Made by a program: the position numbers and the translations under genes
Notes under the pieces: model-generated
Told to the model about the DNA's origin: nothing
Database searches by the model: none
What the model saw: the letters and a program-made list of their open reading frames with translations, nothing else
Origin: Perkinsus chesapeaki ATCC PRA-425
Lineage: Eukaryota; Protista; Perkinsozoa
NCBI GenBank assembly: GCA_013115145.1
Contig: JAAPAO010000319.1
Span: forward strand, 1 to 40,085
Direction of reading: 5' to 3'
DNA: 40,085 nt
Shown here: piece after piece, positions 28,966 to 39,827 of the stretch
Layout: each line of letters starts with the position of its first letter
How positions within the stretch are numbered: position 1 is the first letter of the stretch

Positions 28966-30117
28966 CTATGGGAGCACTAAACTCCTAGACCGTTGTCCCG
29001 CGCTGGGTCTATCATCGATAAGTTTTGGGTTTGCCAGAGCGATGCCGATCTGGCGTGCATCCCATTGATAGTGTAAGTTGTAGTGACGAAGCAGGGTGAG
29101 CCCGACTGCAGTGGGGCCGCGAGATTCCTTGATCATAAGGGTGCAGCTGCGGCCCCCTCGCGTTTCGAGGACGTACAGCTCGCTTGGTACTGTTACATTG
29201 ACATCAGTATCGGATTTGCCTCGCAATACAAGCTTGATCGAAGGGAGGTAAACGCGGTCACTACAGCTTTGTAGTTTATGAGACGACGCAGGGCTAAAAT
29301 TCAGTACCAAGTCTCGACCAGCAGCCTTGAGCCTTGCTTGAATGGCCTTGAGTATTGGGGCAATCACCTTAAGGCTGCCGAATAGCGAGTTTGCCCCACT
29401 GTCTATCAATATAGGACGAGACGTGGATGACATCTCTCCCCCCACTTCAACGCCTTTCAGATCAATGGTCCAGGTCTTCGCCCCTACTGTTAGCGGAACT
29501 TGTAGGAATGGCTCTTGATACTCTGTGGTATCCTTTCCACCAATAATAAGCTCACCTTCATCCATGTTTTCTGGCTGAAAGTAAATTGAAAACTCTCTCC
29601 TAGTGATAACACCCTTATCTAGAAGCTGATCTAATAAAGGAGCGTGATCTCCGTCCTCAGGTCGAGGCGCAAGTCCCAGTGTTGCATGAGGGGGTAGCCC
29701 GAAGGTAGAGTAGTGTCTAACTATACCGAAGTCGACCTCTGGAATCTCGTCTCCTCCAAGCGTGAAGGTACCTTTGTGGTAAACCATATCCACGCGAGAC
29801 TTATCTTGGAATACGACCGACGTCCAATAACCTTCGTGAGGTTCAAGCTTGCCATGATAAGAGCCATAAATCAGTTTACCACAGGGTTCGCCATCGCAGA
29901 TTGATTGGTCCGAAAGGACAAAAGTATCACCTGCCCCAGTGTCTATCATAAGATTTAGGTCCTGACCGTCCGCTTGAATCAGTACAGTAATTTCATCGGT
30001 GACCACCTTCCACTTCACAATCCTCCTCGACATTGGTAGGCGCAAAAGTGTACCACCAGAGCTTTCTATACATAGCAACCACAAAGGAAAGAGTCGTTCC
30101 AGTAGTGGTGGTGACAT
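28966..30117 (-). CDS. Intronless pepsin-like (A1) aspartic protease, copy 1
   Basis: 383 aa; hydrophobic N-terminus, LMIDTGAG, LGLAP, FSIY, GELIIGG, LIDSGA, VGLTLLRHYNLHY. Confidence 0.93.
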   Translation of the reverse strand: MSPPLLERLFPLWLLCIESSGGTLLRLPMSRRIVKWKVVTDEITVLIQADGQDLNLMIDTGAGDTFVLSDQSICDGEPCGKLIYGSYHGKLEPHEGYWTSVVFQDKSRVDMVYHKGTFTLGGDEIPEVDFGIVRHYSTFGLPPHATLGLAPRPEDGDHAPLLDQLLDKGVITRREFSIYFQPENMDEGELIIGGKDTTEYQEPFLQVPLTVGAKTWTIDLKGVEVGGEMSSTSRPILIDSGANSLFGSLKVIAPILKAIQARLKAAGRDLVLNFSPASSHKLQSCSDRVYLPSIKLVLRGKSDTDVNVTVPSELYVLETRGGRSCTLMIKESRGPTAVGLTLLRHYNLHYQWDARQIGIALANPKLIDDRPSAGQRSRSLVLP

Positions 30118-30844
30118 TATATTACTTCAGGCTGTGTTATGCCAAAATGTACGGTACTAAACAATCGCAAGTTGTAGCCAAAGTTAGCCGAAGTTCCAAT
30201 CTCGTGCCGACGAGACGAGACGAGAAAAGGGCTCTGGTGTATTCAGAGGCGCCCGAGACACGCACCGAGAGTGGCTACATGCCGCGTGCTGGCCTCTGGA
30301 GAGGCTCGAACAGGTAAGATAACCTTGAGATATGCTTGGTATAAACGCATGTGGAAAACAATTTGTTTCATGGCACAAAATTGGCTAACAACATTCGACA
30401 TTAAACATTTCTCCCTGAAACTGTTGTGGTATATGATACTGGCTGAACAGAGCCCCTAAGGGATAAAAGACTCGGATTTTGTTGAGTGACGAAGGTCTAT
30501 CTCACTTGTCGAAGCGCTGTGCACGCAATCGAGAGATTGCTGAGGTGCGAAGTTAAGAAACGTGTACAAACGAAGAGCAGGCACGCTCAAAACTTAAGGT
30601 GTACAGAGGACATTGAGCTTGCTATCCATCTTTTCAAGTCTTCCCGAGTAATTACTCGTTTGCCGAAGATCGACGAGCTTCGCGGAGTCGTTGCGCCAAA
30701 AACCGCTGAGTATTGATTCTCACTGAACTCATCGCTTCTCAGTTTGAATTGTCCTAATACCCCAGGAACTGGTCTTTCCAATGTCGCATACGTATTCAGA
30801 ATACGATATTGTTCATTCAGGCTCCATTCTCCTATTTCATGATC

Positions 30845-32041
30845 CTATGCGTCCGGAAAGGTCCGGACCTTCGATGGCTGTGATTTTCTTACTCTTCTCC
30901 TCAACCGCCTAAAAGTGGGTTTTGCTTTTGTCAAAGCGATACCGATCTGACGTTTCTCGGCTTGGTAATGCAAATAATATTGACGAAGCAGACCAAGCCC
31001 GACTACGAACATTCCGGGCAACTCTACGATTAGAATGGAGCATCTCCCACCCCCTGGCCATTCTAAGACGTACAGATCTTTCAGTATCGTCACGTTGACA
31101 GCATCGTCTGATTCCCCTCTCAAGGCAAGGTTGATGGCTGGGAGATAGTCTCGATCACTGCAGCTTTGTAATTCATGATACCCAGAAGGTCTCGATAACA
31201 TATACCGACCAGCAGCATTGAGGCTCGCATTGATGGCTTCGAGTATCGGGCCGGTTACTTCCCGTGGGGCGTAGAGGGAGGTGGCACCGCTATCTATCTC
31301 AGCTGAGTAGGAAGTATAGGGCAAGTTAATATGCTGGCCCGCCACTTCGACCCTCCTCAGATCAACGCTCCATGCATTCGTCCCAACCGTTAGTGGGACG
31401 TGTGCCAATGGTTCTTGGTACCTGGTGGTATCTTCTCCACCAATAATCAGTTCACCCTCATCCATATTTTTGGGTTCAAAGTAAATCGAAAACTTTTTTC
31501 CAGTGATAATGCCTTTATCTACAAGTTGGTCTAATATGGGAACGAAATCGCTATCGTTATCTTCGTCGATATCTTCTGATCTTAGTCTGAGTCCCAGTGA
31601 CGCATGAGGCGGTAGCCCGTTGGTAGAATAGTCTTTTACTATACCGAAGTCAACGTCCGAAACTCTAACTCCACCTAGCTCCAGCTCACCCTTGTGGTGG
31701 ACAATAGACGTGCTGCTATCATCTCCGAAGACAACCTCCGTGGATTCGCGATCGCAAACGGCAAGCTCGCATTGATAGCAGCCAAAAACCGATCCACCAC
31801 AGGGCTTTCCATCGCATCTCGACTGGTTCGATAGGAGAAAAGTCGTGTCTGTCCCAGTGTCCATCATGAGGTTCAATGTCTGGTTGTCGGCTCGAATCGG
31901 CACAATCATTGAGACAGTGAAGATGTTCTCCCATGTAATAAACGTTTGCGAGATTGGCAGCCTCAAGAGTGTGCCATCGATACTCCCTAGGCATAGCAAC
32001 CATAAAGCAGAAAGTTGTTTCTGTCCAGCTGATGGCTTCAT
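30845..32041 (-). CDS. Intronless pepsin-like (A1) aspartic protease, copy 2 (start taken at MKPSAG)
   Basis: MMDTGTD, FSIY, GELIIGG, EIDSGAT, VVGLGLLRQYYLHY; colinear paralog of copy 1. Confidence 0.93.
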   Translation of the reverse strand: MKPSAGQKQLSALWLLCLGSIDGTLLRLPISQTFITWENIFTVSMIVPIRADNQTLNLMMDTGTDTTFLLSNQSRCDGKPCGGSVFGCYQCELAVCDRESTEVVFGDDSSTSIVHHKGELELGGVRVSDVDFGIVKDYSTNGLPPHASLGLRLRSEDIDEDNDSDFVPILDQLVDKGIITGKKFSIYFEPKNMDEGELIIGGEDTTRYQEPLAHVPLTVGTNAWSVDLRRVEVAGQHINLPYTSYSAEIDSGATSLYAPREVTGPILEAINASLNAAGRYMLSRPSGYHELQSCSDRDYLPAINLALRGESDDAVNVTILKDLYVLEWPGGGRCSILIVELPGMFVVGLGLLRQYYLHYQAEKRQIGIALTKAKPTFRRLRRRVRKSQPSKVRTFPDA

Positions 32042-36278: not shown

Positions 36279-39096
36279 TTAGAAGTACTGACAACCGGTG
36301 TGCTTCATCACTTGTCGAGCACAGTATCTGAAGGAATTCAGTTTAGGGGGCTCTTTCCGGCAATGCTTCTGCTGTTGCTGCAATCCTACATTCCTTCTTC
36401 GACACCGTCCATAATCATCTGTCTGGTGATTGAATGCCAAGCGATAGATCGGGAGCCTGACATCAAGCCAAATTGGAAAATATCAGGCGATTCGTTCACG
36501 AGCGTGGAAGGCATTAACCTCACGGGCGAGATTCTTAAACGTGTAAACAACCCTTGTAGCCTATTATCACGTTGTTTATATACAACGAACCCAAGAGTAT
36601 AAAGATAATTTCCCCAGCTTCGTGCGATAACCATCGGAAATAAAAGTCTCACCGTCATCAGGCAGAACCTCGCTGGAATCGTCGTCACTGAGGCTCGAGA
36701 GCGAACTCTCGACTGGGGATGGAACACTACGTGGGGTGAGATCGCGGGCAAGCAACCTGAACCGCCGCCGCCATCACTTCCGCATCACCAATCCTCCGAA
36801 CTCTTACCTGGCGTATATAGCGGCGATGAAGCCTCCTACAAAGCCATCACCGGCGCCGATGTCGTCGGAGATGGCAAGAGGGTCCAAATCTCTCACAGTG
36901 TGTGCGAATGCGTCGCATGTATCCGTTAAGTTGCTGCAGCAAATGACCGGGTCGGGACCTGCCGAGCAATGTCTATACGGCAAACCGTATCTGTTGACCT
37001 TGGGTCATGATAGCCCATGCGCCTGGCTTCATGAATGCTGACACGGCCTCTGCGATCTCGCGCGGGCTCATTTTAGATAGACCCGCGATACCTGCGTGAG
37101 AGTGCAGTTCCGCCGAGGTGAATCGAAGGCCTCACCGAGATGCTCGGCAAACGCGGTAAACTCCACCTCGTTCCCGAATATAACGTCACAAGCGTTTTTG
37201 GCCATATACGTCTGAAAGAGAAAAGTTAGGCGGAGCGAAGCAACTCGTTGACTTACGAAATCGTCGTTCTGGCAGGCCCAAGCAGCGCTGAGACCCGCGA
37301 AGAGCTTTGTGTAGCCAGATTTAATCTGTGGATGATTGGGGATGTATCTGAGAGGGCCGGATGGAGACGCGATCTGACGGAAATACGGTATTATTTACTC
37401 TCTGCACGCGTATCCATCCCCGCAAGCGTAAAACGCAGTCGTATAGAGTATTCTGCAGTCAGTAGGAATGCCTGTCAACAACACTGCTCCTCATTTCCAT
37501 CAACTCTGACCACCTACCTCTATCGGGACCAGCTCGGAACTCCGGCGCTACTCCCAAATCCGTAATCATCGTTCCTGAAAACAGTGCCATCCAAAAACAA
37601 CAGCGGAGCGAAGCTCTTTATTACGCTTCTTTTCCTTAAGAAGAGCGCAACATTTGCCAGTACGTCCACCGGGGAACACCTGAGCGCAGTATCCTCCCCG
37701 CCACGAGCACAGTACTGCCGCCGGTGAATCCTACCTCGAAGTCCGTCTCGAGCCCGGCCTCGACGCAGGCCTCGCGCAGTACATTAGCATATTCATCATC
37801 GCCGACACTGCCGACGATCCGAACCGACGTGTTGGCGAAGCTGACGTCCTGCAAAATAAGTAGCGCTCGCCCGGATGATCGATTATTATGCCACGAAACT
37901 TACGTTGTACTCTGGATCGGTCTCGTGGCGGTCAAACCACCACTTGACGCCTCTCAAGGAGTTCATCGCCTGCCCGCCCGCAATGCGCTGAAAGGATGAC
38001 GCTGGTGGGGACGGCGGCGGTGACAGCTGGGAGGCTTACATGAACTGTTAGCTCCCCGTCCCCCAACATTCGCGCAAACAACTTCTTATCTTCGTCGCTT
38101 CCTGAGATAAAATAAAGTGATAAACTATTGTGTTAGGAGTTATAATATAGACTATGAAGGTGAGTATTAATAGTGAAAACAAAGAGGCCTTGCAAAGGGA
38201 AAGATTTAATATGTTTATCAAGCTGATAAATAACAATACCAATTCCCTATTATATTTACCCAGTGGATAAGCTACCAGGGTTATACTATTTTATATTCCT
38301 AATATGAGTACAGAAGAGAGGAAGGAGTGTGATGAAATTGGCAGTAAGCAGTAGTAGGATAATAGTAATACCATCCGTGAGCCTCTGTGTGTTGACTTTC
38401 AAGCCAAAGCCACTAGCGTCATCAACAGTCGCAACCAAGTCGAGAATAGGGTGGTCGTATGATACAACGCTGAATGTTTCAGCTCCACCCAAGGAACAGG
38501 GACACGTCGTCGAGGAGGACATGACTGGAGTAATAGTCCTTGATAATGATGACGCCTCATCATCATCAGCGGCAGCAGCAGCAGCGACGGAGTAGTCGGC
38601 GGCAGCAGCCATACTAGAGGGGCTATTGGGAAAGAAGGGCTGACACGAATTCAAATGAAAGATGCGACAACCGAAAGATTTTCGAAAAGCTCGCCGAGGA
38701 TCATAGGAATCGACCACGTGTCAGCCCGACTAGCCCCTACCGACCACCGAACCACAACCGTCACTGCGCCAGGAAATTACTCCATGTTCCTTGGGCGTTG
38801 GTAATTACGAAAACAGACTCGCCGAGCTGACACGAAAGCCGTTCCAGAATCCCACCCGTCGTCAGTCGCTGCGTCGCTGGCTCAAGTCCGTAAGTGTTGA
38901 AGTCATCGATCGTTGCCACCAAATCAAGAAGAGGGTGGCACATGCCAACAATGCTGGCGTACTCGTTGGACAGAGCCTCCAAGCGATGCTGAGCAACCGA
39001 GACTCGCTCGTCGTCACAGGTGCTCAGCGTGGATGATGCAATGTCATCATCATCCTTTACTACGACGGGACTTGACGTGGAGGCGATTATCGCCAT
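36279..39096 (-). CDS. Adenosine-kinase-like PfkB/ribokinase-family protein with two alternative first exons (38856-39096 and 38372-38612)
   Basis: HP[LI]LDLVAT, IAGGQAMNSLR, GSVGDDEYA, TGKCCALL, VIFGNEVE, MTQGPDP, DDIGAGDGFVGGF, MKHTGCQYF* (TAA at 36279-36281). Confidence 0.9.
37230..37241 (+). other. Intronic 12-mer GCGGAGCGAAGC, copy 3 (antisense in intron 37212-37256)
   Basis: Exact match. Confidence 0.8.
37603..37614 (+). other. Intronic 12-mer GCGGAGCGAAGC, copy 4 (antisense in intron 37575-37624)
   Basis: Exact match; shares CAGCGGAGCGAAGC (14 nt) with copy 1. Confidence 0.8.
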
Positions 39097-39180
39097 GAGT
39101 TTGGAGGAAAGATGCTGCTCGAAAACGATGGAGGAGGAGAAGGAGAACTCGAGACCAATCGGTAAAATGTTAAATTGTTA
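39097..39180 (-). promoter_or_regulatory. 84-nt intergenic spacer with a polypyrimidine tract and AG, candidate trans-splice acceptor
   Basis: The minus strand reads TTCTCCTTCTCCTCCTCCATCGTTTTCGAG/CAG...CTC-ATG. Confidence 0.45.
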
Positions 39181-39681
39181 TCAGACCAAATTATGCTCTC
39201 TCTTCAGCCGCTCGATCTCGGCCTTCTGCCCCTCGGCGTCAAGCTTCTGCTGCAGACGTTTCTGACTGTAATAAAGGCACACAAGGTACCGACCTGACGA
39301 CCACCACGCGCCATCGTTGACAATGCCATCTCGCAAGGATCCCTACCTGCCACGTTGAAGCCGCTGAGATGGTCCACGGCATTCTTGGCATCATATATAT
39401 CGTCGTATATCACAAAGGCTGTCCCCTAAAATATCTCCCAGTGACGAACTACAGCGGTCGACCGGCGGCTACCTTCGTGCCGGGCGCGTTGCCTTTTCGT
39501 ATTTGCCGAATTGAGCCGAATTTGCCAAAGACATCGTAGAGTTCATCGGGCTTGATCTTGTACGGAAGGTTACGAACCTGAAATACGAAACCGTAAGATA
39601 CGCGTATCTTTTACTGGGCAACCTCACATAGATGATCCGATTAACCTCCGGAGGCAGCCGAACTCTTCCGCGAGAGGTCAT
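39181..39681 (-). CDS. SF3B6: Pre-mRNA branch-site protein p14 (U2 snRNP SF3b), RRM
   Basis: [70 protein letters not shown]; TGA at 39181-39183. Confidence 0.96.
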
Positions 39682-39827
39682 CAGGAGAAAGCCCTACTGG
39701 CCGAAAACTGTCGAGCGAGCCCCGCCCCCAACTCAAAACAGTCGATGCAAGTCCGCGGTGCTCAACGACATATCTCCACAGCGCCAACCAGATGGCATAT
39801 CAATTGACCGGAACCGCGCAGCCTCGA

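Follow-up and report, generated by a model that had tools for sequence, protein, structure and literature searches.

The stretch of DNA analysed here, positions 1 to 40,085 of contig JAAPAO010000319.1 of Perkinsus chesapeaki ATCC PRA-425 (assembly GCA_013115145.1; hereafter the window, 40,085 nt), carries on its minus strand, at 39116-36280, a predicted adenosine-kinase-like gene of the pfkB family whose common exons are preceded by two tandem first coding exons, A and B. The gene model was derived from a reading of the sequence, from splice joints in a related transcript set and from GT..AG checks, and its features are collected in Table 1. Either first exon, followed by the common exons, gives a protein of 437 amino acids (aa), and the two proteins differ in their first 80 residues, in which an isoform-specific extension of ~44 aa is followed by the first beta strand and the opening part of the kinase lid. 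The introns among the common exons measure 40-62 nt, save one of 196 nt. The only form annotated for P. chesapeaki is the B form (KAF4663384.1, 423 aa), which starts with exon B and equals our B model except that it reads through the last intron (36389-36328, minus strand) to a C-terminus ending in ...EEGM. The same intron is spliced in the related transcript and in orthologues, giving the conserved C-terminus ...GIYCARQVMKHTGCQYF of the 437-aa protein.

Table 1 Mapped and predicted features of the adenosine-kinase-like locus, in window coordinates (UTR, untranslated region; the slash marks the splice site)
Feature	Position	Strand	Remarks
Spliced-leader acceptor AG of exon A	39116-39115	-	mRNA body from 39114, 18-nt 5' UTR; X1 and X2 contigs
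Exon A	39096-38856	-	Very probable alternative first coding exon; 80 codons + 1 nt; GMCHPLLD
Donor of exon A, G/GTGGG	38857-38851	-	Phase 1; invariant in all lineages
S1	38834-38823	-	Conserved 12-mer CGTGTCAGCTCG; predicted 5' hairpin arm, shortly after the A donor
Poly(A) site of the unspliced exon-A stub	38769	-	X2 record 3: 39116-38769, then 11 T on the + strand
D	38728-38716	-	Invariant 13-mer CGGGCTGACACGT; inverted orientation, complementary to S1 and S2
S2	38646-38636	-	Invariant GTGTCAGCCCT; abuts the exon B pyrimidine tract on its 5' side
Spliced-leader acceptor AG of exon B (probable)	38624-38623	-	Body would start at 38622, 10-nt 5' UTR; X4 contig
Exon B	38612-38372	-	Very probable alternative first coding exon; 80 codons + 1 nt; SYDHPILD
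Intron between exon B and exon 2	38371-38102	-	GT..AG, 270 nt, 30% GC
Common exons, first five of thirteen	38101-38040, 37987-37904, 37848-37735, 37679-37625, 37574-37518	-	Joints, GT..AG checks, translation, orthologue match
Common exons, next five	37471-37399, 37347-37257, 37211-37136, 37091-36999, 36958-36808	-	Same basis as the first five
Common exons, last three	36756-36653, 36456-36390, 36327-36280	-	Stop 36282-36280; same basis as the first five

In the window, exons A and B are each 241 nt long and open with an ATG, and each is followed by a phase-1 GT donor (38855 beside A, 38371 beside B) that fits common exon 2, which begins at 38101 behind an AG and with the carried G reads G-SDEDKKLF. 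The initial annotation had proposed two paralogous first exons of equal length for this gene, and its coordinates, lengths, start codons, donors and fit to 38101 all proved exact. Exon A encodes a variable N-terminal extension and, following it, the first kinase strand together with the start of the lid (GMCHPLLD). The paralogy was near gapless, as had been claimed: 32 of the 80 residues are identical over the full exons without gaps, and BLASTP of the 80-aa translations aligned the last 35 codons gaplessly with 20 identities (57%, E 7e-12). At the nucleotide level the ungapped identity was 0.44, against a mean of 0.25 (standard deviation (sd) 0.03, maximum 0.436) among 20,000 random segments of the window. 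Over codons 45-80 the identity was 0.56, 0.67 and 0.33 at codon positions 1, 2 and 3; judged by this pattern, the synonymous sites of the A/B core are saturated, with third positions at the random level, and the protein has been kept. The three AGs closest to the exon B ATG on its upstream side (1, 10 and 27 nt before it) are all out of phase with the A donor, a point that held on checking, and run into stops.

Relatives were found with a profile of exons A and B, which returned one full-length B-type protein and several short A-type open reading frames (ORFs). The loci compared were those of two P. olseni assemblies and of two contigs of one Logan run matching two P. marinus gene types; exact look-ups of two further B-type orthologues (P0002 and P0008) found no contig. 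In all loci fetched, from P. olseni and the two P. marinus types, the order of an SF3B6-like RNA recognition motif (RRM) gene, exon A, exon B and the common exons was kept, so that the synteny check suggested at the outset came out in favour of the duplication. An assembly artefact was ruled out, as the same arrangement recurs in independent assemblies of three species. Exon A measures 259, 274 and 226 nt in the relatives, always 1 mod 3, and exon B 232, 181 and 220 nt with its phase (1 mod 3) conserved. Because both lengths vary in this way, the equal length of A and B, true as it is of P. chesapeaki, is a coincidence peculiar to that species and not a conserved property. A tandem-duplication test found homologous tandem exons, both in phase 1 in all four lineages and each fitting the common exon. 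From these comparisons, the best explanation would be a tandem duplication of the exon, older than the divergence among P. chesapeaki, P. olseni and the two P. marinus-type loci.

Annotated isoform pairs are found in the sister species. P. olseni has one pair under a single locus tag, KAF4660576.1 (A, 444 aa) and KAF4660575.1 (B, 435 aa), and a second pair, KAF4697606.1 (A) and KAF4697605.1 (B). P. marinus ATCC 50983 has three adjacent pairs of proteins named 'adenosine kinase, putative' with A-type and B-type starts (EER05508.1/EER05509.1, EER12063.1/EER12064.1 and EEQ99264.1/EEQ99265.1). As annotated gene models, the A-type proteins use exactly the junction between exon A and exon 2 that the initial annotation had proposed. 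These pairs come from the orthologous locus, place A- and B-type first exons on the same exon 2 and are closely similar in the common part; they differ from the P. chesapeaki gene, for which B alone is annotated and the last intron was missed, and exon lengths vary between the species. The existence of two isoforms is thus already in GenBank for P. olseni and P. marinus, which limits the surprise of the present finding; what is added here is the set of mapped processing sites and the conserved hairpin trio described below. A literature search found no paper pairing Perkinsus with adenosine kinase or with alternative trans-splicing, and none on the present exon arrangement.

Both exons are under selection. 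Pairwise ratios of nonsynonymous to synonymous substitution rates (dN/dS) among the four lineages were 0.10-0.24 for exon A, at saturated dS (>1), and 0.21-0.44 for exon B, and the length differences of exon A among lineages were all multiples of three. At the A donor, identity was 0.77 over the final 45 nt of the exon and 0.25 over intron positions +7 to +51, and at the B donor it fell likewise from 0.85 to 0.29; the read-through tails of the short A-type ORFs were unrelated among lineages. Exon A therefore appears to be a living exon, given its low dN/dS, exclusively in-frame indels, invariant donor and a conservation that ends at that donor, and these alignments fit a selected coding exon ending at its donor rather than a relic or a small protein in its own right. 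In the comparison of the two P. marinus-type loci (L002 and L003), dS was 1.39 for exon A and 0.46 for exon B, and the lower value for B may reflect gene conversion or a different constraint on the B side. Since the first exons are duplicated and still selected, two versions of the enzyme are very probably made, and we hold with good confidence that the gene has two alternative first coding exons, born of an old tandem duplication, that give two enzyme forms.

Transcripts from this locus were sought in small amplified, apparently leader-primed 454 libraries of 1-5 million letters per run, which favour short complementary DNAs (cDNAs). Two marine metatranscriptome runs (X1 and X2, from one sample) contained contigs 100% identical to the window that end at 39116 in 21 loose letters, the reverse complement of a dinoflagellate-type spliced leader, which places a leader on exon A. 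The acceptor context, CAG/CA, is kept in relatives, and the genome at this point shares only ~7/22 letters with the leader, so mispriming is unlikely. The complete short cDNA that bears this leader, with a body of 39114-38769, passes unspliced through the A donor and has no stop before its poly(A) tail; there is no A-run in the genome at 38769. The poly(A) site lies 6 nt before an in-frame stop (38763-38761), inside a conserved block and in the loop of a predicted hairpin, 145 nt ahead of the exon B acceptor. For exon B, the X4 contig (38622-38441, 100% identical) starts exactly after the AG at 38624-38623 and has no exon-A letters. This AG, followed by CCCCT or TCCCC, is conserved in the four lineages and follows a pyrimidine tract; the runs examined showed no spliced-leader letters on exon B. 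The joint of exon B to exon 2 (38371>38100) is present in run X5, from a relative 90-97% identical, together with most downstream introns as joints. The initial annotation had suggested looking for both junctions to the common exon and for leader addition upstream of each first exon; the B junction was found in a relative and the A junction was not seen, and the leader was found on A, with the B contig starting right behind its upstream AG and lacking leader letters.

The upstream SF3B6/p14-like RRM gene (39164-39695, minus strand) has its own leader acceptor AG at 39695-39694, and its three short introns were seen as joints. It is polyadenylated at 39164/39168, and the 48 nt between the poly(A) site at 39164 and the exon A acceptor would fit the processing of a longer precursor.

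According to the explanation preferred here, each first exon would be equipped with an AG spliced-leader acceptor and an ATG of its own, together with a phase-1 GT donor for exon 2 at 38101, and transcription would pass through A and B as one precursor. On one route, we infer, the A donor would be cis-spliced over 754 nt to exon 2, removing B together with its signals and yielding isoform A. On the other, the RNA would be cut and polyadenylated at 38769 and the leader would be trans-spliced at 38624/38623, yielding isoform B and, as a by-product, a capped, polyadenylated non-stop exon-A stub. Pairings among three conserved elements, S1, D and S2, would be a candidate for setting the balance between the routes.

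The interval between A and B is mostly unalignable among the lineages, yet it contains invariant blocks, and three of these repeat a single 10-12-mer. Within the 40-kb window there are exactly three occurrences of the 10-mer, all inside the A-B interval, and each relative has it once at each of the three positions. The S1:D helix was predicted at 19-24 bp and -36 to -43 kcal/mol and the D:S2 pairing at -24 to -34 kcal/mol, against a background for duplex energies of -13 to -15 kcal/mol (sd 4). The S1:D complementarity extends well past the shared 10-mer and includes G.U pairs that are valid only on the strand of the gene. The sense strand folded at -58.6 kcal/mol (z -3.4) and the antisense strand at -37.7 kcal/mol (z -2.0). 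The predicted best fold contained S1:D in three lineages and D:S2 in P. olseni, with a gap of 2-9 kcal/mol between the folds. The cores are invariant across lineages except for one C/U position of S1, paired as G-C or G.U. Of the 45 pairs predicted for the interval, only 2 showed two-sided changes, a single one of these belonging to the S1:D helix, and one-sided changes keep G.U pairs (RNAalifold and a custom script). A search of Rfam with 38300-39200 gave only chance-level microRNA matches and no family, and a metagenome scan for the D..S2 pattern gave no match. One reading of the trio is an RNA switch, in which D would pair either with S1, enclosing the poly(A) site at 38769 in a 20-bp hairpin, or with S2, and would so decide between cis-splicing of A and cleavage and polyadenylation with leader addition on B; we offer it tentatively, as a rather doubtful proposal. 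If true, it would be a mechanism of the docking and selector type acting on the choice between cis- and trans-splicing, in an alveolate.

The main alternative to such a switch is a promoter motif for B at the level of DNA. Both isoforms would again be real, with the choice made at transcription by a B promoter in the A-B interval, and the 10-12-mers would be protein-binding DNA sites. The motif does occur in both orientations, as transcription-factor sites can, and conserved blocks lie 25-220 nt upstream of B. An S1:D complementarity of 19-24 bp reaching beyond the 10-mer, with its strand-specific G.U pairs, is less readily accounted for in this way, as is the better folding of the sense strand, and the exon-A stub means that transcripts from A do enter the interval. 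We regard a B promoter as possible, though short of probable.

Several observations weigh against two enzyme forms made from alternative first exons. The junction of A to exon 2 was absent from all reads and contigs examined, an absence made weak by the tiny size of the runs and their bias to short cDNAs, and a search for transcript-derived protein fragments across this junction found only genomic read-through ORFs. The sole exon-A transcript was the unspliced stub polyadenylated at 38769 (two runs, one sample). The leader letters in the reads match the canonical dinoflagellate spliced leader (DinoSL), ATTTTGG, where the Perkinsus form reads ATCTTGG (PMC3101222); the library primer is their probable source. 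The isoform pairs of the sister species stand as annotated models, and no paper on the annotation method was found for the P. olseni and P. chesapeaki genomes. Furthermore, one P. olseni model (KAF4655699.1, 514 aa; L004:4001-6560) combines a portion of A with B, probably through an error of prediction, and automatic models at this locus are therefore not always reliable.

On a different account, exon A is no first exon of the kinase; it would be either what remains of the 5' end of a vanished tandem copy or a small gene of its own, and the RNA 39114-38769 would be its sole product. It would explain why the unspliced stub is the one exon-A transcript seen, in both runs, and why exon A is annotated as nothing or as a small partial ORF (KAF4757201.1) in P. 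chesapeaki and one P. olseni isolate. Against it, the stub reaches its poly(A) tail without a stop codon, and the amino-acid conservation stops exactly at the donor, with unrelated read-through tails beyond it. The low dN/dS over saturated dS, the in-frame indels and the conserved phase-1 donor are unlike a relic, and an 80-aa piece comprising one strand and part of the lid would be unlikely to fold alone. We therefore consider this account quite unlikely. That both exons are included in a single message, A being spliced to an acceptor shortly before B to give a protein with a duplicated N-terminal segment, is hardly credible: KAF4655699.1 is built in this way and the A donor would be in frame with the B acceptor in the P. 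marinus-type locus L003, but the nearest acceptors are out of frame in the window, in P. olseni L004 and in P. marinus-type L002, where most readings meet stops, the 514-aa model uses a different donor inside A and departs from the other orthologue models downstream, and the X4 contig begins at the exon B acceptor.

The identity of the enzyme as adenosine-kinase-like, proposed in the initial annotation, was borne out by profile matches and by comparison with solved kinases. The protein apparently corresponding to the annotated B form of the window (P0023) matched the Pfam family PF00294 (pfkB) with 71.6 bits (E 9e-20), and the P. olseni A form (P0012) with 74.5 bits, both above the gathering score of 25.8 taken as the threshold for membership; a PfkB match reached an E of 1e-20. 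The same search with the single exons A and B returned nothing useful. The best solved relatives were adenosine kinases of Anopheles, Toxoplasma and human (3loo, 3.5e-21; 1dgm, 6e-20; 1bx4), each over ~310 residues, whereas the comparison with ribokinase reached only 5.7e-5. In the common exons the DxxGAGD motif with the catalytic Asp is represented by DDIGAGDGFVGGF, which aligns with DTNGAGDAFVGGF of solved kinases, and the NxxE motif by FGNEVEF, which aligns with FGNE(T/E)E. By these alignments the gene belongs to the pfkB family and would encode an adenosine-kinase-like enzyme.

Exon A aligns to the lVGLGNPLLD strand of the Anopheles enzyme and exon B to vfaiGNPILDLVAEV of the Toxoplasma enzyme. 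The Asp and the Pro-Leu-Leu or Pro-Ile-Leu of the G-x-G-N-P-L-L-D strand are retained and some of its Gly residues are missing (A has GMCH and B has SYDH), while the Asn of the classical motif is replaced by His in both isoforms and in a 40%-identical outgroup. By a hand count over a short stretch of the alignment, this outgroup, which has only one type of N-terminus, agrees with type A at 19 residues and with type B at 15. A 1352-nt Logan contig (L005, SRR19327883) encodes a 40%-identical homologue that lacks the N-terminal extension; it starts with CTCAAG, the last six letters of the spliced leader, and thus represents a leader-capped mRNA from a more distant relative.

In solved adenosine kinases, contacts to the nucleoside are made by three first-strand residues (Asn, Leu and Asp) and by the lid Leu. 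In the alignment to these kinases, the His-Pro-Leu/Ile-Leu-Asp and Gln-Arg-Leu positions are common to A and B. The initial annotation had described the two forms as enzymes with swapped substrate-side N-termini; flanking residues and the 44-aa extension do differ, but the claim was too strong, because these contact positions are nearly the same in both forms. What is swapped is thus mostly the flanking residues and the extension, which has isoform-specific conserved features, and the difference may bear on location or regulation more than on substrate. An AlphaFold model of the P. olseni A isoform, built from an 11-row alignment, had a mean predicted local distance difference test score (pLDDT) of 53, below 50 over residues 1-114, and allowed no structural conclusion for the isoform-specific part.

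The intron after exon B measures 60-80 nt in the P. olseni and P. marinus-type loci, compared with 270 nt here, which points to a lineage-specific AT-rich insertion in the P. chesapeaki intron. The possibility that this intron is an introner was set aside after a search confined to the window found no second copy of it and no terminal repeat. An origin of the locus in Amoebophrya, suggested by the canonical DinoSL letters, the compactness of the gene and the introner-like AT-rich intron, was likewise discarded, since protein look-ups assigned the locus to Perkinsus. Elsewhere in the window, a 19-nt tandem repeat of five copies stands at the start of the contig (1-129), and a tandem duplication of ~1.9 kb, with copies 73-76% identical, occupies 29022-31549.

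Alternative and mutually exclusive exons are said, by Kondrashov and Koonin in 2001 and by Letunic, Copley and Bork in 2002, to be born by tandem exon duplication. The present locus resembles such cases in having two homologous exons of the same phase, each of which alone would give a complete protein and both of which are selected. It differs in that the duplication concerns the first coding exon, which brings a start codon and a 5' end of its own, so that the choice would lie between 5' ends, set by a leader acceptor or a promoter, and not between internal exons. Mammalian adenosine kinase also has long (nuclear) and short (cytoplasmic) isoforms from alternative first exons, chosen by promoters. 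Here too a member of the same family varies only at its N-terminus through alternative first exons; however, the mammalian first exons are unrelated and provide a short N-terminal tag, whereas the Perkinsus pair is paralogous and also covers the first strand and the start of the lid, each exon having a trans-splice acceptor (that of B being probable).

In kinetoplastids, alternative spliced-leader trans-splicing yields N-terminal variants, and nematodes have alternative leader-capped first exons. The likeness lies in two leader acceptors within one gene that give different 5' coding ends, with an upstream poly(A) site near the next acceptor. The difference is that use of the upstream acceptor in Perkinsus would require a 754-nt cis-splice that removes the downstream acceptor and exon, and we know of no such case described in perkinsids or dinoflagellates. 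Competing pairings between a docking site and selector sequences direct mutually exclusive splicing in Dscam exon 6 and 14-3-3 xi. The Perkinsus trio is similar in that D, a single conserved element, has complementarity to both S1 and S2, the conserved copies beside the alternative exons. Unlike those systems, it has only two putative selectors, one after the A donor and one before the B acceptor; cis-splicing would compete with trans-splicing plus polyadenylation; and covariation is almost absent, the core being invariant.

The annotation of P. chesapeaki is corrected here by the addition of a very probable isoform A and of the last intron. The locus would be an old and clean case in which duplicating a first coding exon has diversified a protein, in a lineage whose mRNAs are capped with spliced leaders, and it is suited to studying how the choice between a long cis-splice and polyadenylation with trans-splicing is made. 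Transfection and genome editing of P. marinus are reported in PMC8062965. The hairpin trio is a concrete, mutable candidate for the control of exon choice. Two adenosine-kinase-like forms that very probably differ in their N-terminal extension and at the edge of the nucleoside site would be relevant to purine salvage in Perkinsus, a parasite of oysters and clams.

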